The notes under the pieces are model-generated. The model did not search any database, was not told where the DNA came from, and was given only the letters and a program-made list of their open reading frames with translations. Both the position numbers and the translations under genes were made by a program. A stretch of 64,000 bases of DNA from Lepidodermella squamata (Eukaryota > Animalia > Gastrotricha): the NCBI GenBank assembly GCA_047495785.1, contig JBLDXI010000045.1:806001-870000 (forward strand). The letters run 5' to 3'. Within the stretch, counting starts at the first letter, position 1, and the number at the start of each line of letters is the position of its first letter. Shown here in pieces: positions 97 through 57,400 of this stretch.

Positions 97-3000
97 TCAG
101 CAGCGTAAACCAAAGTCAACAAAATAATTGTCTACCCATATAATTAGGCAGATGACAAAACCACAGCGTCGCAAGTGCGATAAACCTACATTACGCTCGA
201 CAGGAGCACTCGATTGAGGAGCCGTCTCTATTACCGGCTCTTTCACCGAGCCCGAACTGCTGCCGTCGCCGCCAGGTTGTGGCAACGGCTCTTCAGCGTC
301 GGGCTTTTTCTTCATTAAGGAATGGAACGATAGCTATGCGATTGGTAAATATAAATAATCATAATGTATGACTATCTGATCGACTAATACAGGATATAAT
401 AAACACATTTGCATTCTCAATGACGGCGCTCGACGAATAGGAGTGATTTTTAGGGTGTAAATATGTAAATTAGGGTGTCGATATTTGGGAAACATACCTT
501 TACGTTGCCGTAATGAGTTTCGAAGGCTGATCGCAAGCTTGGAGCGAAACGCCATTTAGCGTCTGAAAGCTGCTTCAAAAGCCAGTCAGCTTGACGGTAA
601 GCCAACTGAAGTCGCCATGAAGCGTGGTTCTACAATTAAAATATAAAAATAATTAAACAAGCTAAAATTTCACACCCAAAGAGAAAGATTTGTTCTAGGG
701 CTAATTTTGAAGAGAAAATAAATTCAATTTTCGGGATTTAATGGGGAGTTATTCCGACGTGCAAAAATAAAATGCGATTGTTCTTGAGTTCAAGCGGTTA
801 AAAAATCCTTAACCGAATTTACCTCGACTTATCATGATTATAAAAAGGTGGAATATCCGATTTTCTGAATAAAGACCAATATTTATAACCCCAATATTTT
901 CGCAACTACCAAGGCGGGGATATTTTTTAATTTAATCAGAAATTACCTGGAATTTATCGAAATCGCTATCAGCATAAGGCACCAGTTCTGTGGTGCAGTT
1001 ATCCAAGTCTTGCAAAACGTCCTTCAAAGCCGACAACGCGAATTTAGCCACAACACTCGAATACTCGAGATCAGAGATGCGGCCCATCGCGTTGTCGATG
1101 GTCGCGAGCGACGACGGGCGGGCCTGGCGCGAAGCACCCAGCTCCGGGTCGAACGTTCGTTTAATCTTATCCAGCAAATAATCAATCTCAACCCGCAGAT
1201 TACGCCGAGTTGCCGAGGTCGCCAAACCAAGCGGTCGCAGGTCGAGCGTAGTCGAGCGGATCCGTTCAACGCAGACAAGGCGCTGCGCGAAATTTTCACT
1301 TTCACGCAACTCAGCCGCTCGGCGATTCGCGTCCTGCTTCGCCGTTGAAACGCCGCTGGCGAGGCGAGACGACAACTGCCGGCTGTCGACGACAATCCAG
1401 CCGAAACGAGCGGCTAGAACTTCAGCCTCAACGAACAGCTTATCACGATGCGTTCGGCTGTCGGTCTTGAAGTAATCGCGGCATTGCTGCGACAACAAAT
1501 CAGCGTTTTTCGCGATGTCATTCGCTTCGATTTGCAGCGTTTCAAGCTGTTCGTCCGGCGAAAGAGTTGTCACGGGCGTTGTTGGCGGGGTCGCCATCAC
1601 CCGGTCGACAACTGACCGCAGTTTCCTCAACCGTTCGTTCAACTGCTGCTCAGCGCTGACGAAGTGACTCCACGCGGTGGCGTAGTCATTTCGCCGGTTT
1701 TTCTGCGACTCCAGCGACTTCTGAACATTCGCGATAGCTTGAAGAGCTGAATTCAGCTGATCACGATATTCAGCCCCGGATGGGTCGTTGCCGGAGTTCA
1801 GCTGATAAGCCAGGCTTTTCAGGCCATCGATCGCCTCAGACATCTGCGAGTCGAACTCTTTATCATGCAAGCAGCACTCATCAGATAGACACAAATGAGG
1901 CTTTGAAGCTGAATTCGTGATGTCAAGCAGGCGAACTAAGAAACTGGCGAACGATCGAACCGCCTCGCCGGAAGACTGGACCAAATTGTTCTGCAATTCC
2001 GCCTCTTCCTCGCTCGGAGTTGGCGAATTCGACCGTTGCTGAACCGCCCGGACTAAAACAGTTTCGGAGAATCGTCGCCACATCAAAGTTAGCCGGCGTT
2101 CGACCGCATTTAGCTGGCCGAGAAGGGCGCCGTAGTCGCCAGGGGTTGCCGAGTCAATCGAGTTCGCAATGTCGTACAATCGATTACCAGCGCCCGACAG
2201 CTGGTGGATGATGCTGTTGAACGGCGATGTCTGCTGGTCCTGGCCGGGCTTCAGCCACGAGTTGACAGGCCGAGACTGGAATTCGAGCATGTTCTGCTCA
2301 ACGTCATTCAACTCGTTGTCAATTCCGATCAGCATCGCGCTCCAGCGTTGTTGTTGCTGGTCGTCCTGCGGGACTTTCACGGCAGTTATCGGGTCTTCTT
2401 TCAGAGTCAAACTCTCCAACCGCTCCAGGTCGCCGGTGATCGCAGCGTCGACTACGCTGGCGAGGCGGAAGAACGCGTTGGCGAGGAGTGGCGGCGCCTT
2501 TTCAGAGGCAGACTGCTCCGATCGGATGACCTGGTTCAGCTCCATGCGCAGTTGCTGCAACGCGGCGATGCGCTGCTTTGTCGGCCGGTTGTTGCTCGGT
2601 TCGCTGCTGACGGCGGCCTGGCGACGCAATTCAATGTCACACACCGCCTGCCACGCCTCGACGACGCGTTGCTCGGAGGTTATCCTCGAAGACAGCAGTG
2701 TGCCGAGGCGGCCTCGCAGTTGCGAAATCAAGTTTTCGTTCCTAGGAAAAATGATAATCATGTTAAAAATGCCGAAATGTCAATTCACGAATTAGAAAAC
2801 ATATTATTATTTAAAATTAATGTCAATCTTATCACCCGAAAAAAATTAAAAACCCACTATTTTTCCCGCACATGTCTTTTCTTCTTGCTGAAGAACCGAA
2901 TACTGATCTATTCAAACATTATTGGTATGCAAAGCCAAAGAAGCAATAAGTATGATTCGGAAGGGCAAAAAACCTTATAATCCCGACTGATAATTATCTA

Positions 3001-5035
3001 CATGTTTCTATTCATTATTCCAAAATTTTGGGGGAAAATGGAAAAAATGGTCGCCTATTCAACTAAGTAGACCATATCATTAAATAGCGATAGAAATAAA
3101 TTCAAATCTCTAAGCATGAAGTTTGATCCAAATTTTGCGAGTTAGCTCAAGCGAAAAATGTGCGCATTTCCTGTTTACGAACAGCCGATAGGATAAACGA
3201 TTTTTCAATCAGCAGACATATTTCCCAAAGTTAGTGATTCATGATATATTTCTAATATATTTTTCCTCTAATAAAATTGGTAAAAATGAAGTTAAAACAA
3301 GGCATACCTGGTAATGGAGTCGAAAAGGCGAGCAGTAATATTTTTCACGAGCGATTCGATCGTAGGTGGGACAGGAGCTAGGGGGTTAGACGCCGACTGC
3401 TGAGGAACACTTCGAACCAAAGCCGTAAAATTCGACCTCTCATCGCTGAGTTGTTTACAACGCGTGTAAAACGCGGCGACATCTCGCTCAACAGCAGCGC
3501 GGCCAGACCGATGGCGCATGGCCAGGGTCTGAATCGAATCCAGCAAATACTCGAGCCACTTCGACGCACTGGTCGTATCGCCCATCGACGAACCGCCACG
3601 GTCGAATTCGCGGCATTTCGCCGCTAACACGTCCGTCTGCTCGCTGAGCATTACAACCGCAGTTTTATTGGCGTTGCTCAACTCGCAGGCTTGGGAAGAC
3701 AGTGAACAAGCATCGGCCAACGCGCCGCGGACTCGGTTCAACCGGGCCTCAACAGCCTGAGCGGTTTTCGCCTGTGCTGAGTTCCGGCCGGGTAGCGAAG
3801 CTAGAAACGCGCGTTGCTCCGCGTAAAATTCGCCCTCTTTCGCGTAAACCTGGGCGGTGTCGCGAATTTTCATCAGCGGTGTCAAGTTATACTCGTCAGA
3901 CCCGGTAGGCGCGATCGGGCAGCGAACAAGCCATTGTTCGACCTTATCCAGCCATTGTAAAATTTTGCTCAACAAAAAGTCGGACGGCTCTTCACCAGGC
4001 CGTTGATTGGTCGCAGGCCTAAACGGCTGTTGCTGGTACGGGCTTGGCACGTCAGTACCCTTATCGTCCCATTTCCTTGGCAGCAGATGGGGCTGGTTCG
4101 GGTTTTGAACGACGACTTTCGTGACTGTTGTCGTCGTGCTAGTTGTTTGGCGAGTCGCGGCGGTTCTCGTCGTAGTCGGCTGTGATGGCAGCTGCGGTCT
4201 AACAACTGGCGTGGGGCCGGCTGAACTCGGCCGGGCGAGGTCTTCTCGAGACCCGGACGCAGGTCGTCCGCCCCACGAGTCAATAACTCGGGTCGATCTC
4301 GGGCTCGGCGTTCGAGACCTGGTGTAACGCTCAGGCGACCGGCCAGACCGGTCGCCACTGACCCACATCGAGCTGTACTGCGCAACAATTTGGCGAAGTC
4401 GCTCGCGTTCGCGTTCGAGATCGGCGGATAGATTTTGTAACTGGCGATGGATGACTTGGGGCGCGGCATCGGAGGCGACGCGCGGTGGCGATCGGCCGCG
4501 AGCTGTCGGGTTGACGGACTGGCTGGTCGCCGACACGGTGTTCGCCAGCTGTTGGCTGCGATCGCGCAGGAAACTGACGTGAGACGACAATTGCTCGAGT
4601 AAATCTTCACCGCGTTCCGTGGTTGAGATGACATTTTCGTACTGAAAATTAGCCATTGGCCAAGGAAAAAACATAGCATTATAAATTTATAGAGATCACA
4701 TTGCAACTAAAACAGGTGAGTAAATACGAGCCGAAATTTCTGACACAAAAATAGGGCTAAGGAAAATAATAACAAACCTTGTGCAGTTTTGTTTCCGTCC
4801 GCTGACGCAAATTAGTGAGTTGTTCCTGTAATTGGCGAGTTCGGCTGATGACTTCATTTTGCTCAGCGAGAGCTGCAGAGCGCGAGGCGATGACTGATGA
4901 TGTGCCGCGAGGCGAAGGCGAGCGAACGCGATTCCCTGGCTGTGCGATCGATAGCGCCGACTGTGACGTCGTTCGAGCGCTCTCGCCCATCTCGCCTAGA
5001 ATAGTTGACTGCGTCTCCAGGAGCTGCAGCAATTT
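97..5035 (-). CDS. Large alpha-helical rod protein with spectrin-repeat-like segments (nesprin/dystrophin/plakin-like); shared exons 5035-4778, 4641-3308, 2741-947, 629-498, 333-97
   Basis: Long ORFs join in frame at canonical GT-AG junctions (LHK|YEN, ITR split in phase 2, KFQ|NHA, NVK|LSF). Heptad-rich helices carry spectrin-type Trp motifs (ILQWLDKVEQWL, WSAMLIGIDNELNDVEQ, WSHFVSAEQQLNERL). The first exon lies upstream and the last exon is uncertain. Confidence 0.7.
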
Positions 5036-49556: not shown

Positions 49557-50801
49557 TGCTCTGGATAAAAGAGTTCGATTGGGCTATCATAATGAGATAA
49601 ATGTAACATTTAGGCGCCTCTTTTTCTTCGTTGACTAATTCTTCAACCTAAAATGTAAACCGCAAGAGACTACGAACAATTGCTAAGCACCATGGCCGTG
49701 CTGGTACTGGAATAATTATCTAAAAGTGATGATGATGATGTCGATTGCTAATGAGATGCAAAATTAATCACGAGAACATTTTGGAGTTCATAAAAAAAAT
49801 CAGTTGGTATAACTGCGACAAACAAACAATGCCTCCGGGTAATTGAAATGCACGTGTAACTCATCAGCTGACCTGACCTGACTCCTAATGGACTCCCGAA
49901 CACATGTTTTCTCGTACAGAAAAAAGAACAGGAGCTTCGCTTGTTGGATAAAATCACAATCATGTGTTAACTGCTGAACTGGTATATACGAGTAATTTAA
50001 TTCTTTTCGATTTTGAATACATGTCGCTTTTGTACCTTTTCTTCGTACAGACAAAAGCACGGGAGCATTGGCAAATAAAATGTGTATACGGGTGAACTGG
50101 TATTGACGTAATTTTATACGTTTTGATTTTAAATACATGCCGCTCATTTGCTCTCTTTTCTGTGTGACCTTTCCAGCTGGATGAAAATGCTTTCCGGTCG
50201 ACCTGTTAACTTATAAAATATACCTCATTATACGAATTATGAGTCACCGACCTGTAATTAAATTGAACAGAGTCCAAGTCCTGCCTGTATTTAAGGTCTG
50301 TCAATCTCAACCCCCAACAGCAGGACTAGGGGAGAGACCCGAAGGTTCTCCAATGGTATTGCTCCCGTCCTAGTTCTTCCACACCCGCTTGCAAACAGAG
50401 ACAGAACCTGAACATTTCTCTCAGATGGCTGTCAAGTTCACCAGCAAGCTAGTTAGGCTAACCGTGGGGGGTTACCTTAAAAGAATTTTTTCAGCGCCGA
50501 GCATCCACCTTCATCGGCGATAACTTGGCGTACGCGACCCAAAATTTGCCATAAAAATGCGTTGCCCGTTACCTCCACCAGGAGGCTGCTGGTGTTACTT
50601 GAACCGCAGTCGGCTCTACGATCCCTGTGCGGTAACACCCAAAATTAGCTAAACCAATAACACTTCGCGGTTCGATAACTGCTAGCAACCGCCTTCGACC
50701 AGCAAAAGATTCGTGAAGTTTTAGATAAAGTGGATTATTTGCTGGAAGAGAATTAGTGCAATTACTTTCTAGCGCAATTCTCATTTTGGTTTATACCTAG
50801 C

Positions 50802-52479
50802 ATGTCAAGATTAGCATGGCTTATTTTTCTATGCGGAGCAGCCGCTGTTCTGTCGCTGGCAGCATCGAATCCTTGGCATCAAGCGGAAGAAGAATACGAA
50901 GATGAAGAGGTTGGTAGCCTTTCAATACATAGATGTGTGATATCGAATATTGCTACAGGAAGGCTGTGTGATTCCGAAGTTGTCTAACTCGTTCAAAATA
51001 AAGTCCCTCAAGTACTCCATTTCATCGCCACATGATCAATTTACTGGGACGAAGGACGAGGAGAGAGTTCCTCTTGGTTCGCGATTGTTCATCGCTTGCG
51101 AGGCCGGTTATAAAGTAGATGGCCCGAAAGAGCATGCTTGCAAACGAGATGGAACTTGGGATATCACTCCCAAGGGTTGCGTTCCAAGTAAGGAAAAGAG
51201 ATCATCTATCATTTCAAAACAAGGTTAAGAGAGTTGAAATTGTAATTTTTACAGCACTAAGCACTGAAACTGCTACCGCAGTTGCGACTGAAGAGGAATA
51301 CGAAGATGACGAAGAAGGACCAACCTCACCTGAACCAACCACTCTCGCTGAAAATACCACGAAACCGACCAGCCAGACTATAGCTGATTCCTCACAATCT
51401 AATACCAATCCTGAGCAATCCTCGGAAGGTATGCGAAAGGCATTTTTGCAAGAAGGCTGTATTATTCCGAAGTTGTCTAACGTTTCCTTAATGTACATCT
51501 TTTCATCTCCACGTTATAATCCTGCCGTTACCGAGGGGGCGAGAGTTCCTATTGGTTCGCTCTTGTTCATCATCGCTTGTAAGATTGGTTATAAAGTTGA
51601 TGATACGACATGGCCTGCTTGCAAACGAGATGGAACGTGGGATATCACTCCCCAGGGTTGCGTTCCAAGTAAGGAAGATATCATCATATAAAACAATGTT
51701 AACAGCTTGAAATTGGAATTTAAGAGGACGAACAAACCTCACCTGAACCAATCGAAGGAACCACGAACCCAACCAGCCAGACCCCAGCTGGTCCGTTACA
51801 ATCTAATACCGAGCCTGAGCAATCCACGGAAGCTGCTTCGATAAGCGCTGAAACATTAACTTCCTTGGCTGCCGGTGAATCGATTGAAAGCACCACGGAA
51901 GAATCCATTTCATGGACAACGGAAGCTACTTCAAGCCCCATTGAAATTTCTCAGCAATCACAAGCGGGTGAATCTGCTGAGAGTAAAGCCTTGGAAAACA
52001 CCACCGAAAAATCAGTCGATGAAGCCAAAGAGATTTCTAATACTGAGCCAGTATCTACAACTGCCGAAGCTTCCTCAATTCCGCTTACAAAAACCGAATC
52101 AAATCCTGAAGATACTACAGTTGCTTCGAAAAGAGCCGAAATGTCAGCATCCTCGGCGGCTGACCAATCGATTGTAAGGACCATTGAAGCGCCGACTTTG
52201 TCGGCAACTGAGGTTACTTCAAGCCCTACCGCTGCGTTATCTCAGCGATCACAAGAAGTAGATGAATCTGCTCAAAGAACAACCTTGGAAAAAACCGAAA
52301 TATCAACTGTAGAAGCCAAAGAACCTACTACTGCTAAGCCAGCATCTACAACAACCGAAGCTGCCTCAACGCCGGCGCTCGCGGCTGCATTGACCGATGG
52401 CTTAGCTTGTCGCCGAAATGTTATGAGTTTTAGCCTAAATATAGCCGCCAAGTTCGACGTTTCTTATCTTGGCAATTAA
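50802..52479 (+). CDS. Secreted/surface protein with two Sushi (CCP)-like domains and long mucin-like stalk, copy B
   Basis: Signal peptide; two C..P..C..GYKVD..CKRDGTWDITP.GC modules, each followed by a phase-1 intron; S/T/E-rich internal repeats. The 3' end is uncertain. Confidence 0.82.
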
Positions 52480-52639
52480 GATACATGAGCCACATATTTA
52501 AACCCATAAAAGACTTGTTACATGCGCCCGTGATACAACAAAAGGCGTAATAAAAGCATTATCGGTTCGATTTTGAGCTGATATTTACAAAATTACGGAA
52601 TCTTTTTGGCATAGCTGAATAAGTCGGGAGGAAACATTA

Positions 52640-53086
52640 CCGTAAACTACAGTATAAAGGCCGCATCCTGAATAAAGGCCGCACTCGAATAATCCCCGCA
52701 AAACACCCCATTTTCAACAATTTGGCAATAATAAAGGCCGCGCGCGAATAATCGCCGCACTTAATAGCGATTAGCAGTCACCCTCAATGAGACACCTGGG
52801 GTGACTCCGAGTAGACGGTAGTAGTGCGATTATCCTCACTTCTTAGCGAATAAGTAAACTCATCGCGCTAGCTGCAGATCTTGATTACAGTAAAATCCGC
52901 CCTCTGGCGCACCTGTTACACCCGTTAGTAGTGAATAAACTGCTAGTTCAGCGTGACGGCTGAAAATTCAAGAAAATAAAGGCCGCACTCGAATAATCGC
53001 CGCACCTGAATAATCGCCGCATTTTTCACCCCTTTATGAAAAATCAGGAAAATTAATCCCCGCGGCCTCTATACTGTAGTTTACGG
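52640..53086. mobile_element. pogo/Tigger-like MITE (447 bp, TA TSD)
   Basis: TA|CCGTAAACTACAGTATAAAGGCCGC ... GCGGCCTCTATACTGTAGTTTACGG|TA; multiple AATAAAGGCCGCA / AATAATCGCCGCA subterminal repeats. Confidence 0.9.
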
Positions 53087-53121
53087 TATGTATTTAGAAC
53101 ACGTCCTTTATTTTCTATAGT

Positions 53122-54084
53122 TTAATTGCGCAAAGCAACACCGCACATGAACGCATATATAAGATGACCTAGCAATCGCCCAGTTCTGTATTCCTCAATG
53201 ACCGGGTTGTATTCCGAGAAATCGATCAGCTTGGTGTTGTTCCACTTCCCAGCTGTAAATGCGATATCCATAGCTTCCTCTGCCGTCAACCCAACAACAC
53301 CAGGACAGCTAACGCCCGGGCAGTAGCTCGATGCAATACTGTCAATGTCGAAAGACACGAAAACGCTGCGTTGCTCGAATGATCGCAGCAAACGTTTGAA
53401 GGCCCATTCGATTCCGCCATCGGTTTTACGAGATTCCCTCAGCCACTTCACGTCGCCATTTTTCGATTTAATATAGCGAACATGTTCATCGGAACATGAT
53501 TCACCTTGGCATGCAAATGCTGCATATTTGAGACCGGGGAATTCCTCTATAAGCTCGCGAAACGGGCTGCCGCAGTGAGCGAGAAGTTGAACCTGGCCGT
53601 TGCTGTCGACTTTTTCGATCAATGGACGCACGTCAAGGTGCGCATCGATGTTGACTACGGCAGCATTATCGCCTCCTCCGACTTGCTTAACAAACGCTCG
53701 CCCATTCGGTGCGCTCTGGTCGTTCCCGCCGCCTATGATAATAGGAATATCGCCTTGTCTAAGAACCTCAGCGACGTGGTCCTCCAATTCTTTAGCAGCT
53801 TCCTCGAGCGACTTGGCGGCGTCGTTTCGGACGAAGTGGCCGATTTTTAGGGTTGCGTTTCTTAAATCTGCTCCGTTTTCAGGGTTTAACAGAGTTCCGA
53901 AGGCCGGAAGTCGCTTGAGTAGAGCAGCTGGTCCCTTTGCAGCACCGACGCGACCGAAATTTCTCGCGATTCCTTCATCTTGCTCCCAGCCGAGTAAGAC
54001 GAAGCGAGGTGAACATCCAGCATCAGATTTATTGATCATGTCTCCAATGCGAGGATCGCCTGGTCTGCTCACGTAGCTTTCCAT
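53122..54084 (-). CDS. hutG: Formimidoylglutamase (ureohydrolase/arginase family), intronless, 320 aa
   Basis: DEG..RN.GR.GA..GP (HutG-type N-terminal motif), GGGNDQS, NIDAHLDVR, HCGSPFR, SFDIDS..PGVS.P, SEYNP; AATAAA just after the stop. Confidence 0.88.
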   Translation of the reverse strand: MESYVSRPGDPRIGDMINKSDAGCSPRFVLLGWEQDEGIARNFGRVGAAKGPAALLKRLPAFGTLLNPENGADLRNATLKIGHFVRNDAAKSLEEAAKELEDHVAEVLRQGDIPIIIGGGNDQSAPNGRAFVKQVGGGDNAAVVNIDAHLDVRPLIEKVDSNGQVQLLAHCGSPFRELIEEFPGLKYAAFACQGESCSDEHVRYIKSKNGDVKWLRESRKTDGGIEWAFKRLLRSFEQRSVFVSFDIDSIASSYCPGVSCPGVVGLTAEEAMDIAFTAGKWNNTKLIDFSEYNPVIEEYRTGRLLGHLIYAFMCGVALRN

Positions 54085-54737: not shown

Positions 54738-56524
54738 TCACTTTTTGGGGCAAAATACGTCATTAAGATAGTCGATGATTTCGTGGTAACCCTGCCGGCT
54801 GACCTTGGACCGAATTGCCCCGCAGTTGATAGACTCGCAGTGTTGCGCACGCTCCAATTGACTGTGATCTACCCGAGTACAGCCTGCGGCTCGCATTCTC
54901 TCGACCAGCCGCCGATTTTCATCGGCCAACACATCATGCGAGCATGACTGAACAAAAGTACGAGGCATTTGAGCCAGATGCTCATCCGAGGCGAGTAGAG
55001 GCCATGCTCGAATGCATGAGGCTAGTTCCAATATCGCAACAGGGATCTTCGGCACATCTTCCATAATCTTCCGCTTTTTCAACTTTTTCTCGTGTTGCTT
55101 CGATATAATTTCTTCGGTTTCCTGTTCGAAACCGGAATCCATCGATTTCTCCTCATTGCATTCGGCAGAACCAGGAGCAACGAGGTTGATAAGATACCGA
55201 TGTTCGTTCAGCACGTGTTGGTCGTGGTAAATTGCCCTGATTGTTTTCCGACTTGGCCTAACACCGGCGTAAACTGACATGAACCAGCCGAGGTTGGCTC
55301 TGCCGTACTTTCGCGTGTACTTGCGTGAACTTTCGAGACTCATGGTAATCGCTTGACTAACAGGGCAGATGAGCACGCATGCATGCAGTCGATTTTCGCC
55401 GCTTCTAATCAACTCTAAAGCAGTTGCGCAGGCTAAATTACCCCCGGCGCTGTCGCCTGCTATGACAATCTTTTCCGTATCAATCTCAGCCGGTAAACTA
55501 GAATCTGCGAAGTGAGATGAGTTAATTTCAGCGTTGAGAATCGCCCGAGTCACGGCTATGCAGTCATCCAGGGCACATGGGTAGGGAAATTCCGGGGCTA
55601 ATCGATAATCGATTGATACTACAATAGCACTGGTGTCGCGACACAGCCTTGTAGTAAGAGAATGATACGATCTCGCCGAACCCATCATCCAGCCTGAAAT
55701 CGAGAAATTTCATATTTTTTAGGATGGAATATAAATTTTCGAAATCTCCCATATGACCTCAATATTTCCAAAAATATGTTCTCGCTGCCGCTTGAATTCA
55801 AGCTTTTTTGTTCACGTGAATACAACATGAACGAGTAACACCTGCGCACGTGGGTAAACAATAGCCGCGTGATTTTTTCATGTTTTTGGTCCTAAACTGT
55901 TTTATGTGGGCAAAATGGTGTGGAATTCACTGAGCCCGAGCGTGCGTGGCGTACTTGCTCGATTAAAAATACGTGAGCATCCTTCGGCCATGGGGCTAAA
56001 ATTCTTTGTCTAATTTCATAACAAAAATTCGAGTTCTCCAAAATACACGCAAAAGACCACAAATTGCGCTCACCTCCTCCGTGAATATAAATCAGACAGG
56101 GCAATTTAGTAAGGAAGACGCAGCTTTGCTCATCGACTGCTTTCACTGGCCGATAAATGCGGACTTTGACCCCGGCGATATTCGACTTGGAATGGTGAAC
56201 ATGAGGATGCTGAAGCCGTTTCGATCCACTGAAGGCCCTCATAAAACGCCGCATGACGCTGTAGTAGGCGCCTTTGAAGCCGAAACGCGATAGCATTTCG
56301 CCGAGACCGAGCGCCCCACTGGCCGAGCCCAACAAGAGCCGACGTCGCCACCGATTCTCAAGGTAAGCTTTCCTGACTTTAGCATCCTCCTCGTCTTCCA
56401 GGAATTCCGGTCCTTCGGCGATTATTTCGTCCGCGCCCATTGCTATTGTCAACCGGCGGCTGTTTTTTCTGCCAACAATTGACTCACTGTCGATGAATTT
56501 CAGCTCTTCATCGCTAGCTGCCAT
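54738..56524 (-). CDS. HSL-family alpha/beta hydrolase (AADAC/NCEH1-like esterase), 2 exons (56524-56074, 55693-54738)
   Basis: HGG|GW oxyanion motif split by the intron; SIDYRLAPE; GDSAGGNL nucleophile elbow; catalytic Asp (HDVL) and His (AQHC). Confidence 0.92.
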
Positions 56525-57400
56525 TATTTTACCGCCGATACCTCGATTTGTCAATTAGTTGAATTAGTTTTAAAAACAAATTGCTAGCGAGTGTGAAATA
56601 AACAATAAAAAAGTTGCCGGCAAACCGCGTGTGTACTCAAGAAGTACTTTTTTAGCTGTTGGGTGCGTGTGACCCCGCGATTTCAAATGATGAATCTTAG
56701 ATAATATATAGCTACTTTTTTCGACAGCGAATAATAAGGAATATTACGGCGCAGTATAGTCGACAACAGGTAACGGGGCACACACGTGCTGCTTGTTAAC
56801 CCCGTCTTTTCGCGGACTTTGGACCCGCATGAGCCTTTTGTCGTTCTCGGTAATGAGATACACGCCGTGGCGCCCTCAGTCAAGAGTGGGCTCGCGCTTA
56901 ACACTCATTATCCTTATACTTCACGAATGAAAAAAATGAAAAATACCGGCAATATACACAAACAAGCGCAGCGTATTTCTGGCGGGGAATTTTAGAGTAA
57001 GTAATACGGCGGCAAAACAAACAAATAGCTGAACACTCTTTCATTTGATCCTCTCCAAGTTGAGAGCATTACAATTATAGTTGTCATTAGGAAATTTCTG
57101 GCGAAATTGACCAACAAAACCGCGTTAATCTGATCTTGGCACTTGTGAGCTTTCGTGGTGGAAATAAAAGTTGACAAGTCATCATTTATCTCTCAGGGTT
57201 CAAAGTCCAATTTCAGGTAACATGACTGCTGTATTCAGCTATTCACCCTGAAACTCGGGACAACGTCATAAAACAAAAATGACAAAACTCACAGCGACTT
57301 TATTTTTTTTTCATCAACTCAACATCAAAGTTTTACAGTGAAAACAATAAGTATTATTTATAAAAATAATTACAAAATTACTATACATTTTGATAATTAG

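Follow-up and report, generated by a model that had tools for sequence, protein, structure and literature searches.

Animal histidine catabolism classically ends with the folate-dependent formiminotransferase–cyclodeaminase (FTCD). Outside animals, the activity on formiminoglutamate of a hydrolytic enzyme, the formiminoglutamase (FIGase) of Trypanosoma cruzi, is reported as experimentally confirmed (PMC12203737). Here we describe a gene that appears to encode an enzyme of this type in the gastrotrich Lepidodermella squamata. It lies in a stretch of 64,000 nt (contig JBLDXI010000045.1, positions 806,001-870,000), which we call the window and to which the locus coordinates refer. On balance we think it probable that this is a host gene for a T. 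cruzi-type FIGase that offers a folate-independent exit from histidine degradation beside FTCD, and that it is an old eukaryotic (opisthokont) gene retained in few animals.

The protein family and its pathway

A first-pass annotation, made from the sequence alone, had described a complete, HutG-like open reading frame (ORF) lacking introns, and both statements hold: the minus-strand frame (Table 1) is continuous over 320 aa from an ATG with just 8 open codons upstream, and contigs from a cDNA-like run show no joint inside the coding sequence (CDS). The Pfam Arginase profile (PF00491) matches it at 116.5 bits (cut-off 22, E 2e-33), with residues 28-313 aligned to positions 3-278 of the 280 in the profile, and profile and predicted fold agree in placing the protein in the ureohydrolase/arginase superfamily. 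Among solved structures, the best matches are the T. cruzi entries 4MXR, 2A0M and 4MYN (E ~1e-66; 7e-67 for 4MXR), which cover residues 6-319, and the next solved protein reaches only E 7e-10. The segment GGGNDQSAPNGRA is identical, letter for letter, to that of the T. cruzi enzyme (4MXR/2A0M), and the four T. cruzi motifs that the annotation had listed are all present: GGGNDQS at aa 118, FACQG at 190, PGVSCP at 256 and EEYR at 297.

AlphaFold, given 62 relatives, produced a confident model (predicted local distance difference test, pLDDT, 94.7; predicted template modelling score, pTM, 0.93) for which the top fold matches in the PDB are all ureohydrolases, with the arginase alpha/beta fold. 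The best of them is T. cruzi FIGase (4MXR/4MYN, template modelling score, TM, 0.86/0.92, root-mean-square deviation 2.3 A), with the Bacillus subtilis formimidoylglutamase second (TM 0.82-0.84), ahead of metformin hydrolase, guanidinobutyrase and agmatinase; arginase ranks below these (~0.66).

The label “bacterial-type” that had been attached to the protein does not fit. Its score with TIGR01227, the equivalog for classical HutG, is 103.5 bits (cut-off 229.15), and the protein also falls below the cut-offs of the arginase (TIGR01229, 41.8 bits vs 227.6) and agmatinase (TIGR01230, 68.1 bits vs 174.3) equivalogs. Because it fails all three, and because its full-length similarity to the T. cruzi enzyme exceeds that to any other solved ureohydrolase and is accompanied by the GGGNDQ, DxHxD and DxD motifs, we assign it, from its sequence and predicted arginase fold, to a distinct T. 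cruzi-type formiminoglutamase subfamily rather than to “bacterial HutG”. Nothing but generic bacterial arginase and FIGase clusters came back from an Atlas feature search.

We aligned 174 family members, and all counts of ligands and conservation given here refer to that alignment. The six ligand positions N121, D147, H149, D151, D246 and D248 are retained in the protein, as are R153 and E291. The annotation had drawn attention to the Asn at the first ligand position; it is indeed there, but it is no peculiarity of this protein, since 172/174 members have it. It is the ligand position of the T. cruzi enzyme as well, because the corresponding PDB titles read “N114H variant with Mn2+2”. By homology, the gene product would be a cytosolic arginase-fold metallohydrolase with a two-manganese centre, in which Asn121, Asp147, His149, Asp151, Asp246 and Asp248 would hold two Mn2+ and a metal-bridging hydroxide would attack the formimino carbon of N-formimino-L-glutamate, yielding L-glutamate and formamide.

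The rest of the pathway was sought in the same genome with family profiles that were matched exon by exon, the exons not being merged into spliced models. The three upstream enzymes are present: histidine ammonia-lyase (HAL) in five exons on our contig C24, urocanase on C54 and imidazolonepropionase (HutI) on C13, the last with 349 bits summed, above its cut-off. N-formimino-L-glutamate is therefore made in L. squamata, where it has two possible fates, as a complete FTCD is also retained: formiminotransferase and cyclodeaminase exons lie on C15 with short introns between them. Whether the genome keeps FTCD was one of the checks that had been proposed, and its outcome bears on the suggested folate-independent route. 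Such a route is reasonable, given the pathway partners, but FIGase would be an exit parallel to FTCD and not its replacement: HAL, urocanase and imidazolonepropionase would supply the substrate in the same animal, which would thus have both ways out. The genome also holds canonical arginases elsewhere, so the window gene is not the animal's arginase. These form a tandem pair of animal-type genes at G000:C17:2112396-2115349, one of which is a single open frame of 375 aa; intronless metabolic genes are thus not unusual in L. squamata.

The locus, its transcription and selection

FIGase lies on a 926-kb contig with spliced genes on both sides (Table 1), 650 bp from an arylacetamide deacetylase (AADAC)-like gene. 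The introns of this neighbour (380 nt, minus strand) and of the mucin-like gene downstream (56 nt, plus strand) are both bounded by GT..AG and removed in cDNA contigs. Full-length named matches of the AADAC-like protein are vertebrate and nematode arylacetamide deacetylases, and its identity to named animal orthologues is only 27-31%. The intron-rich surroundings described in the annotation are real as far as these two genes go, but long single-exon ORFs are common in the window (609, 460, 451, 353, 755 and 308 aa), and the single-frame arginase is a further case. FIGase resembles its surroundings in composition: GC and GC at third codon positions (GC3) are 0.507 and 0.502, versus 0.494 and 0.511 in the adjacent exon. 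The poly(A) signal noted earlier is also in place.

Table 1. Features of the FIGase locus (window positions, except in the last row)
Feature	Position	Strand	Basis
Single-exon CDS, predicted T. cruzi-type (Asn-variant) formiminoglutamase (FIGase)	53122..54084	-	ORF, Pfam, PDB match, fold
GGGNDQS motif, aa 118-124; Asn121 (53722-53724) stands where arginase has its first metal ligand, a His	53713..53733	-	alignment
D147-A-H149-L-D151 metal-ligand motif (NIDAHLDVRP)	53632..53646	-	invariant in 174/174 aligned members
D246-I-D248 metal-ligand motif (SFDIDS)	53341..53349	-	D246 in 173/174, D248 in 174/174
AATAAA poly(A) signal, 9 nt past the stop codon	53107..53112	-	cDNA depth drops right after it; retained in older duplicated fragment
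Upstream neighbour: AADAC-like carboxylesterase, at least 2 exons, intron 55693-56072	54738..56554	-	Pfam Abhydrolase_3, named matches, cDNA joint
Downstream neighbour: Ser/Thr/Glu-rich mucin-like gene, intron 51669-51724	50038..52628	+	ORF, cDNA contigs
MITE-like host repeat (terminal inverted repeats of 27 nt), 19 nt beyond the poly(A) signal	52638..53088	.	inverted repeat, depth
Two inverted segmental copies, each with a 3' FIGase fragment	G000:C45:791403-793016 and 793210-795601	inverted	

The 3' flank carries a repeat resembling a miniature inverted-repeat transposable element (MITE). It is 451 bp long, contains internal 30-nt repeats (AATAAAGGCCGCACTCGAATAATC...) and is read at a depth of 1000-4000 in the DNA run X1, vs ~70 elsewhere, which is 15-60 times the single-copy level. 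Positions 50038-53448 of the window, which hold the mucin-like gene and the 3' end of FIGase, have been copied twice in inverted orientation ~65 kb away on the same contig. The FIGase fragments in the copies are decaying and measure 354 nt (93.5% identical) and 74 nt (89%), the longer one having changes inside the EEYR motif, and the mucin-like parts are 70-88% identical. The repeat is not present in these two older copies: it inserted after the local segmental duplication.

Short-read contigs from X1 tile FIGase and both flanks, with no listed contig spanning the whole stretch. A second public run, X2, dates from 2015 and belongs to a separate study. It is cDNA-like, in that the SMART oligo occurs as a loose end and the introns of both neighbours are skipped, and it gives the check on expression that had been asked for: the CDS is covered, its word depths being similar to the values for the neighbouring genes, with no depth across the 550-bp spacer upstream. 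Both runs also contain a second haplotype or strain, and the differences listed between it and the window over 219 codons are 14 synonymous and 3 non-synonymous (2 further differences lie outside that listing), corresponding to a ratio of non-synonymous to synonymous change (dN/dS) of ~0.06 (binomial P 5e-7). Purifying selection acts on a FIGase gene that is intact, integrated and transcribed; residence in host DNA together with expression is also what a transferred gene should show.

The closest relative of the AADAC-like neighbour (50%) was found on a 43-kb metagenome scaffold (ENA ERZ23486787 scaffold_865), beside SETDB1-like, Sushi+ankyrin and astacin genes, and the animal behind that scaffold may be a relative of L. 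squamata. No FIGase occurs within the 15.8 kb of it that were examined for synteny.

Relatives, trees and rival origins

Named relatives were drawn from two sets of annotated NCBI/UniProt proteins, the best 120 matches each for the gastrotrich and the Hydra query. The best matches of gastrotrich FIGase are 46-50% identical, and the named relatives comprise Hydra vulgaris, bdelloid rotifers, Capsaspora, an ichthyosporean, chytrids, blastoclads and many Amoebozoa, as well as Andalucia, trypanosomes, a ciliate, a dinoflagellate and Nitrospinota bacteria. The only named animals in either set are Hydra vulgaris and the bdelloids, with no flatworm, mollusc, annelid, arthropod or vertebrate among them; when Hydra was the query, the closest named sequence from outside the cnidarians came from Capsaspora (54%), and the set contained no further annotated animal. 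As each set holds only the best 120 matches, weaker animal orthologues may be hidden. Wide occurrence across animal phyla along the species tree, which the first-pass annotation had named as an outcome that would refute its reading, is not what these two sets contain. L. squamata adds a third animal phylum to this very patchy distribution. As far as annotation goes, an animal enzyme of this kind is no novelty, since databases already name the Hydra protein “formimidoylglutamase”; our literature search found no paper that discusses FIGase in animals, and a published study of horizontal gene transfer in bdelloids does not mention it.

Among 185,579 bacterial and archaeal species scanned, the GGGNDQ type reaches 40-47% identity in Nitrospinota and just 30-36% in Kapaibacteria, Bacteroidota, Gemmataceae, Acidobacteriota and others. 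The Nitrospinota enzymes are as close to the eukaryotic ones as those are among themselves, and gastrotrich FIGase is 50-51% identical to those of Nitrospinales, equal to the highest values among eukaryotes.

The lack of an intron, which had been read as a sign of transfer, loses its force among these relatives. The Hydra gene, on a chromosome of 87 Mb, likewise lacks introns (924 bp encode 307 aa), as do the metagenome relatives described next and one of the gastrotrich's own arginase genes; a single intron, ~50 bp long, interrupts that of Adineta vaga. Intronless FIGase genes of the Hydra clade stand alone on AT-rich (~34% GC), gene-sparse, evidently eukaryotic ENA metagenome contigs of 0.1-3.1 Mb from several samples, and one cluster at 90% identity has 46 members across many contigs. 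ERZ25878469 ctg71213 (3.1 Mb), ERZ25072490 ctg196597 (664 kb) and ERZ25073822 ctg40568 are among the contigs of the Hydra clade. Their flanks offer only FERM and GST hints, which are eukaryotic, and the organisms behind them may be abundant micro-eukaryotes or micro-invertebrates. In Adineta vaga (CP075493.1, L019 6001-7586), a gene for a PP-binding (acyl/peptidyl carrier) protein follows FIGase by less than 100 bp, and the annotation of Didymodactylos carnosus joins them in a single fusion protein of 491 aa (PF00491 + PF00550).

We built two quick trees, a careful 68-row tree, a careful 38-row tree and a rooted careful tree in which the bacterial tier at 30-36% identity served as outgroup. 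The 38-row set omits 30 of the 68 rows, including the long-branched P0104 and Aduncisulcus, and keeps Blepharisma. In the rooted tree, eukaryotes and Nitrospinota form a starred clade (97/99) with gastrotrich FIGase inside it, which answers the call for a phylogeny at this level, although not for the backbone within. The gastrotrich protein joins the unnamed Logan sequence P0008 (run ERR14224705) and a clade containing Hydra, a link of moderate strength, with a Shimodaira–Hasegawa-like approximate likelihood ratio test (SH-aLRT) support of 92 and 93 in the quick trees and a bootstrap/SH-aLRT support of 87/88 in the careful 38-row tree. In the rooted trees, Nitrospinota form a clade within the polytomy of eukaryotes, a position suggestive of gene transfer between the two groups, in either direction. 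Two further groupings were seen: a metagenome-assembled genome labelled Nannocystis exedens groups with Trypanosoma and a dinoflagellate, and the proteins of the chytrid Chytriomyces hyalinus and the testate amoeba Arcella intermedia are tight sisters on a long shared branch (support 100, 68-row tree), a pairing that either a recent transfer or one contaminated data set could explain.

Four constraints were put to approximately unbiased (AU) tests on the 38-row set, and none of the four placements was rejected. Uniting the Hydra group with the Capsaspora/ichthyosporean/chytrid clade cost 5.2 log-likelihood units (p-AU 0.19), placing FIGase with Nitrospinota 11.3 (p-AU 0.051), placing it with the bdelloids 18.5 (p-AU 0.062), and bringing all animal sequences together 18.4 (p-AU 0.068). 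With these trees and tests, a recent bacterial origin is without support and opisthokont descent fits comfortably; strongly supported nesting in a non-animal donor clade was not found. Single-gene trees do not separate patchy retention from old transfer. The clade is spread across eukaryotes, and on the account we prefer its gene would have been kept in Hydra, bdelloids and L. squamata and lost in most other animals. Vertical retention is the simplest reading, with an old transfer from another eukaryote nearly as likely, and we infer the substrate and the metal as we do the vertical origin.

Several observations weigh against a host FIGase retained by descent. Gastrotrich FIGase has a long branch, with 1.2-2.4 changes per site; no starred clade unites it with relatives within the eukaryote and Nitrospinota group in any tree; its partner in the careful 68-row tree is a ciliate with a long branch, Blepharisma; and the backbone collapses to a polytomy once the outgroup is added. 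Animal sequences are not one clade in the free trees, where the bdelloids group with the jakobid Andalucia (starred), and the metagenome relatives in the Hydra clade carry no taxon assignment. On the side of function, no FmdA/AmdA-type formamidase that would take up the formamide was found in the genome, and no assay of an animal member of the subfamily was found in the literature, with reported activity confined to the T. cruzi enzyme (PMC12203737). Of the 63 columns with conservation of 95% or more, 6 differ from the consensus in this protein (P34E, G85V, H97A, S171C, E189A and Q196S), and it has two small loop insertions after DVRP, so that an altered substrate is possible.

The tree-based objections would be accommodated by an old horizontal transfer, in which an intronless FIGase from a non-animal eukaryote or a Nitrospinota-like bacterium later acquired host composition, signals and repeats. 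We regard this as rather unlikely, if a serious competitor. The restriction of animal matches to Hydra and bdelloids in the best-120 sets, the non-monophyly of the animal sequences, the level of identity to Nitrospinales, the intronless gene and the Nitrospinota placement, which the AU test keeps, though only just, all speak for it. However, no donor clade is supported, and FIGase never nests in bacteria or in a named protist group; a single all-animal clade is not rejected and union with other opisthokonts is easily accepted; intronlessness is common to Hydra and to ordinary host genes; the composition is indistinguishable from that of the host; and the best-120 sets may hide the very orthologues whose absence counts for transfer. 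The annotation had left the choice between lateral acquisition and patchy retention open; the patchiness among named animals is borne out and a donor is not, and FIGase is a weak candidate for gene transfer. The objections from function would instead be met if the protein were an arginase-fold metallohydrolase acting on another formimino or guanidino compound, which we consider improbable. Besides the conserved-column departures and the loops beside DVRP, the “DAGD” segment is rewritten (GHFVRND), the branch is long, FTCD already covers the step, and guanidinobutyrase, metformin hydrolase and other enzymes belong to the wider fold family. Nevertheless, all metal ligands and 57 of the 63 highly conserved columns are retained, purifying selection is strong, the two solved types of FIGase lead the structural matches, and the enzymes that produce the substrate are present; the lineage may also simply evolve fast, as the low identity of the AADAC-like neighbour to its orthologues suggests. 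That the gene came from a protist or bacterium co-amplified with the single animal behind an assembly based on multiple displacement amplification (MDA), or from a chimeric assembly, has one point in its favour: the likely source assembly was made from whole-genome-amplified DNA, and 370 non-metazoan contigs were removed from it (PMC11660948). The spliced animal neighbour so close by, the host-like GC3, the host MITE in the 3' flank, the FIGase fragments duplicated together with a neighbouring host gene, the tiling X1 contigs, the separate cDNA-like run and the dN/dS make contamination very unlikely, to the point that we give it hardly any credence, and the annotation's view of the contig as an animal locus stands.

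If our preferred reading of a host FIGase beside FTCD is right, L. squamata could burn histidine to glutamate without drawing on tetrahydrofolate, and at least some animals would keep, in addition to FTCD, a hydrolytic, folate-independent enzyme whose characterisation is so far confined to T. cruzi and bacteria. This would be a testable case of redundant routes linking amino-acid catabolism to one-carbon metabolism. A broader proposal, which we make tentatively and rather doubt, is that early animals had both exits, FTCD and hydrolytic FIGase, or that freshwater micro-invertebrates acquired the latter repeatedly, and that the hydrolytic enzyme persists, encoded without introns, in scattered small animals, mostly of fresh water (Hydra, bdelloids, the gastrotrich and perhaps the eukaryotes behind the Hydra-clade metagenome contigs).

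Comparison with known enzymes

FTCD, the usual animal route and present in L. squamata with both domains, also consumes N-formimino-L-glutamate, but it has an unrelated fold, depends on tetrahydrofolate and hands the one-carbon unit to folate without releasing formamide. The animal's own arginases share superfamily and two-metal chemistry with FIGase; unlike it, the C17 arginase passes TIGR01229 (284.5 bits) and matches rat arginase 1 at 5e-72. Classical HutG (TIGR01227; B. subtilis 3M1R, V. cholerae 1XFK) has the fold and the annotated reaction of gastrotrich FIGase, yet is only ~20% identical to it and belongs to a different branch of the ureohydrolase family. Its first metal ligand is a His.

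The T. cruzi enzyme (2A0M, 4MXR, 4MYN; Hai et al. 2013, via PMC12203737) has in common with the gastrotrich protein the Asn ligand, DxHxD, DxD, FACQG, PGVSCP and EEYR. The two are ~43% identical in the multiple alignment, and the pathway setting is alike, with HAL, urocanase and imidazolonepropionase present. They differ in the two post-DVRP loops, in the six conserved-column changes and in the FTCD that the gastrotrich also has, and the Cys of the T. cruzi “DEGC” segment is Ile in the gastrotrich protein. In the 2013 T. cruzi work, this Cys is said to take part in a disulfide at the active site in the oxidised forms 4MYF/4MYK/4MYL.

By tree path, the nearest named relative is the Hydra vulgaris protein annotated by NCBI as formimidoylglutamase. 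It is of the same subfamily, has the same ligands, is likewise encoded by a single exon and is 48% identical to gastrotrich FIGase. The Hydra protein is short-branched and stands close to that of Capsaspora, whereas the gastrotrich protein is long-branched.

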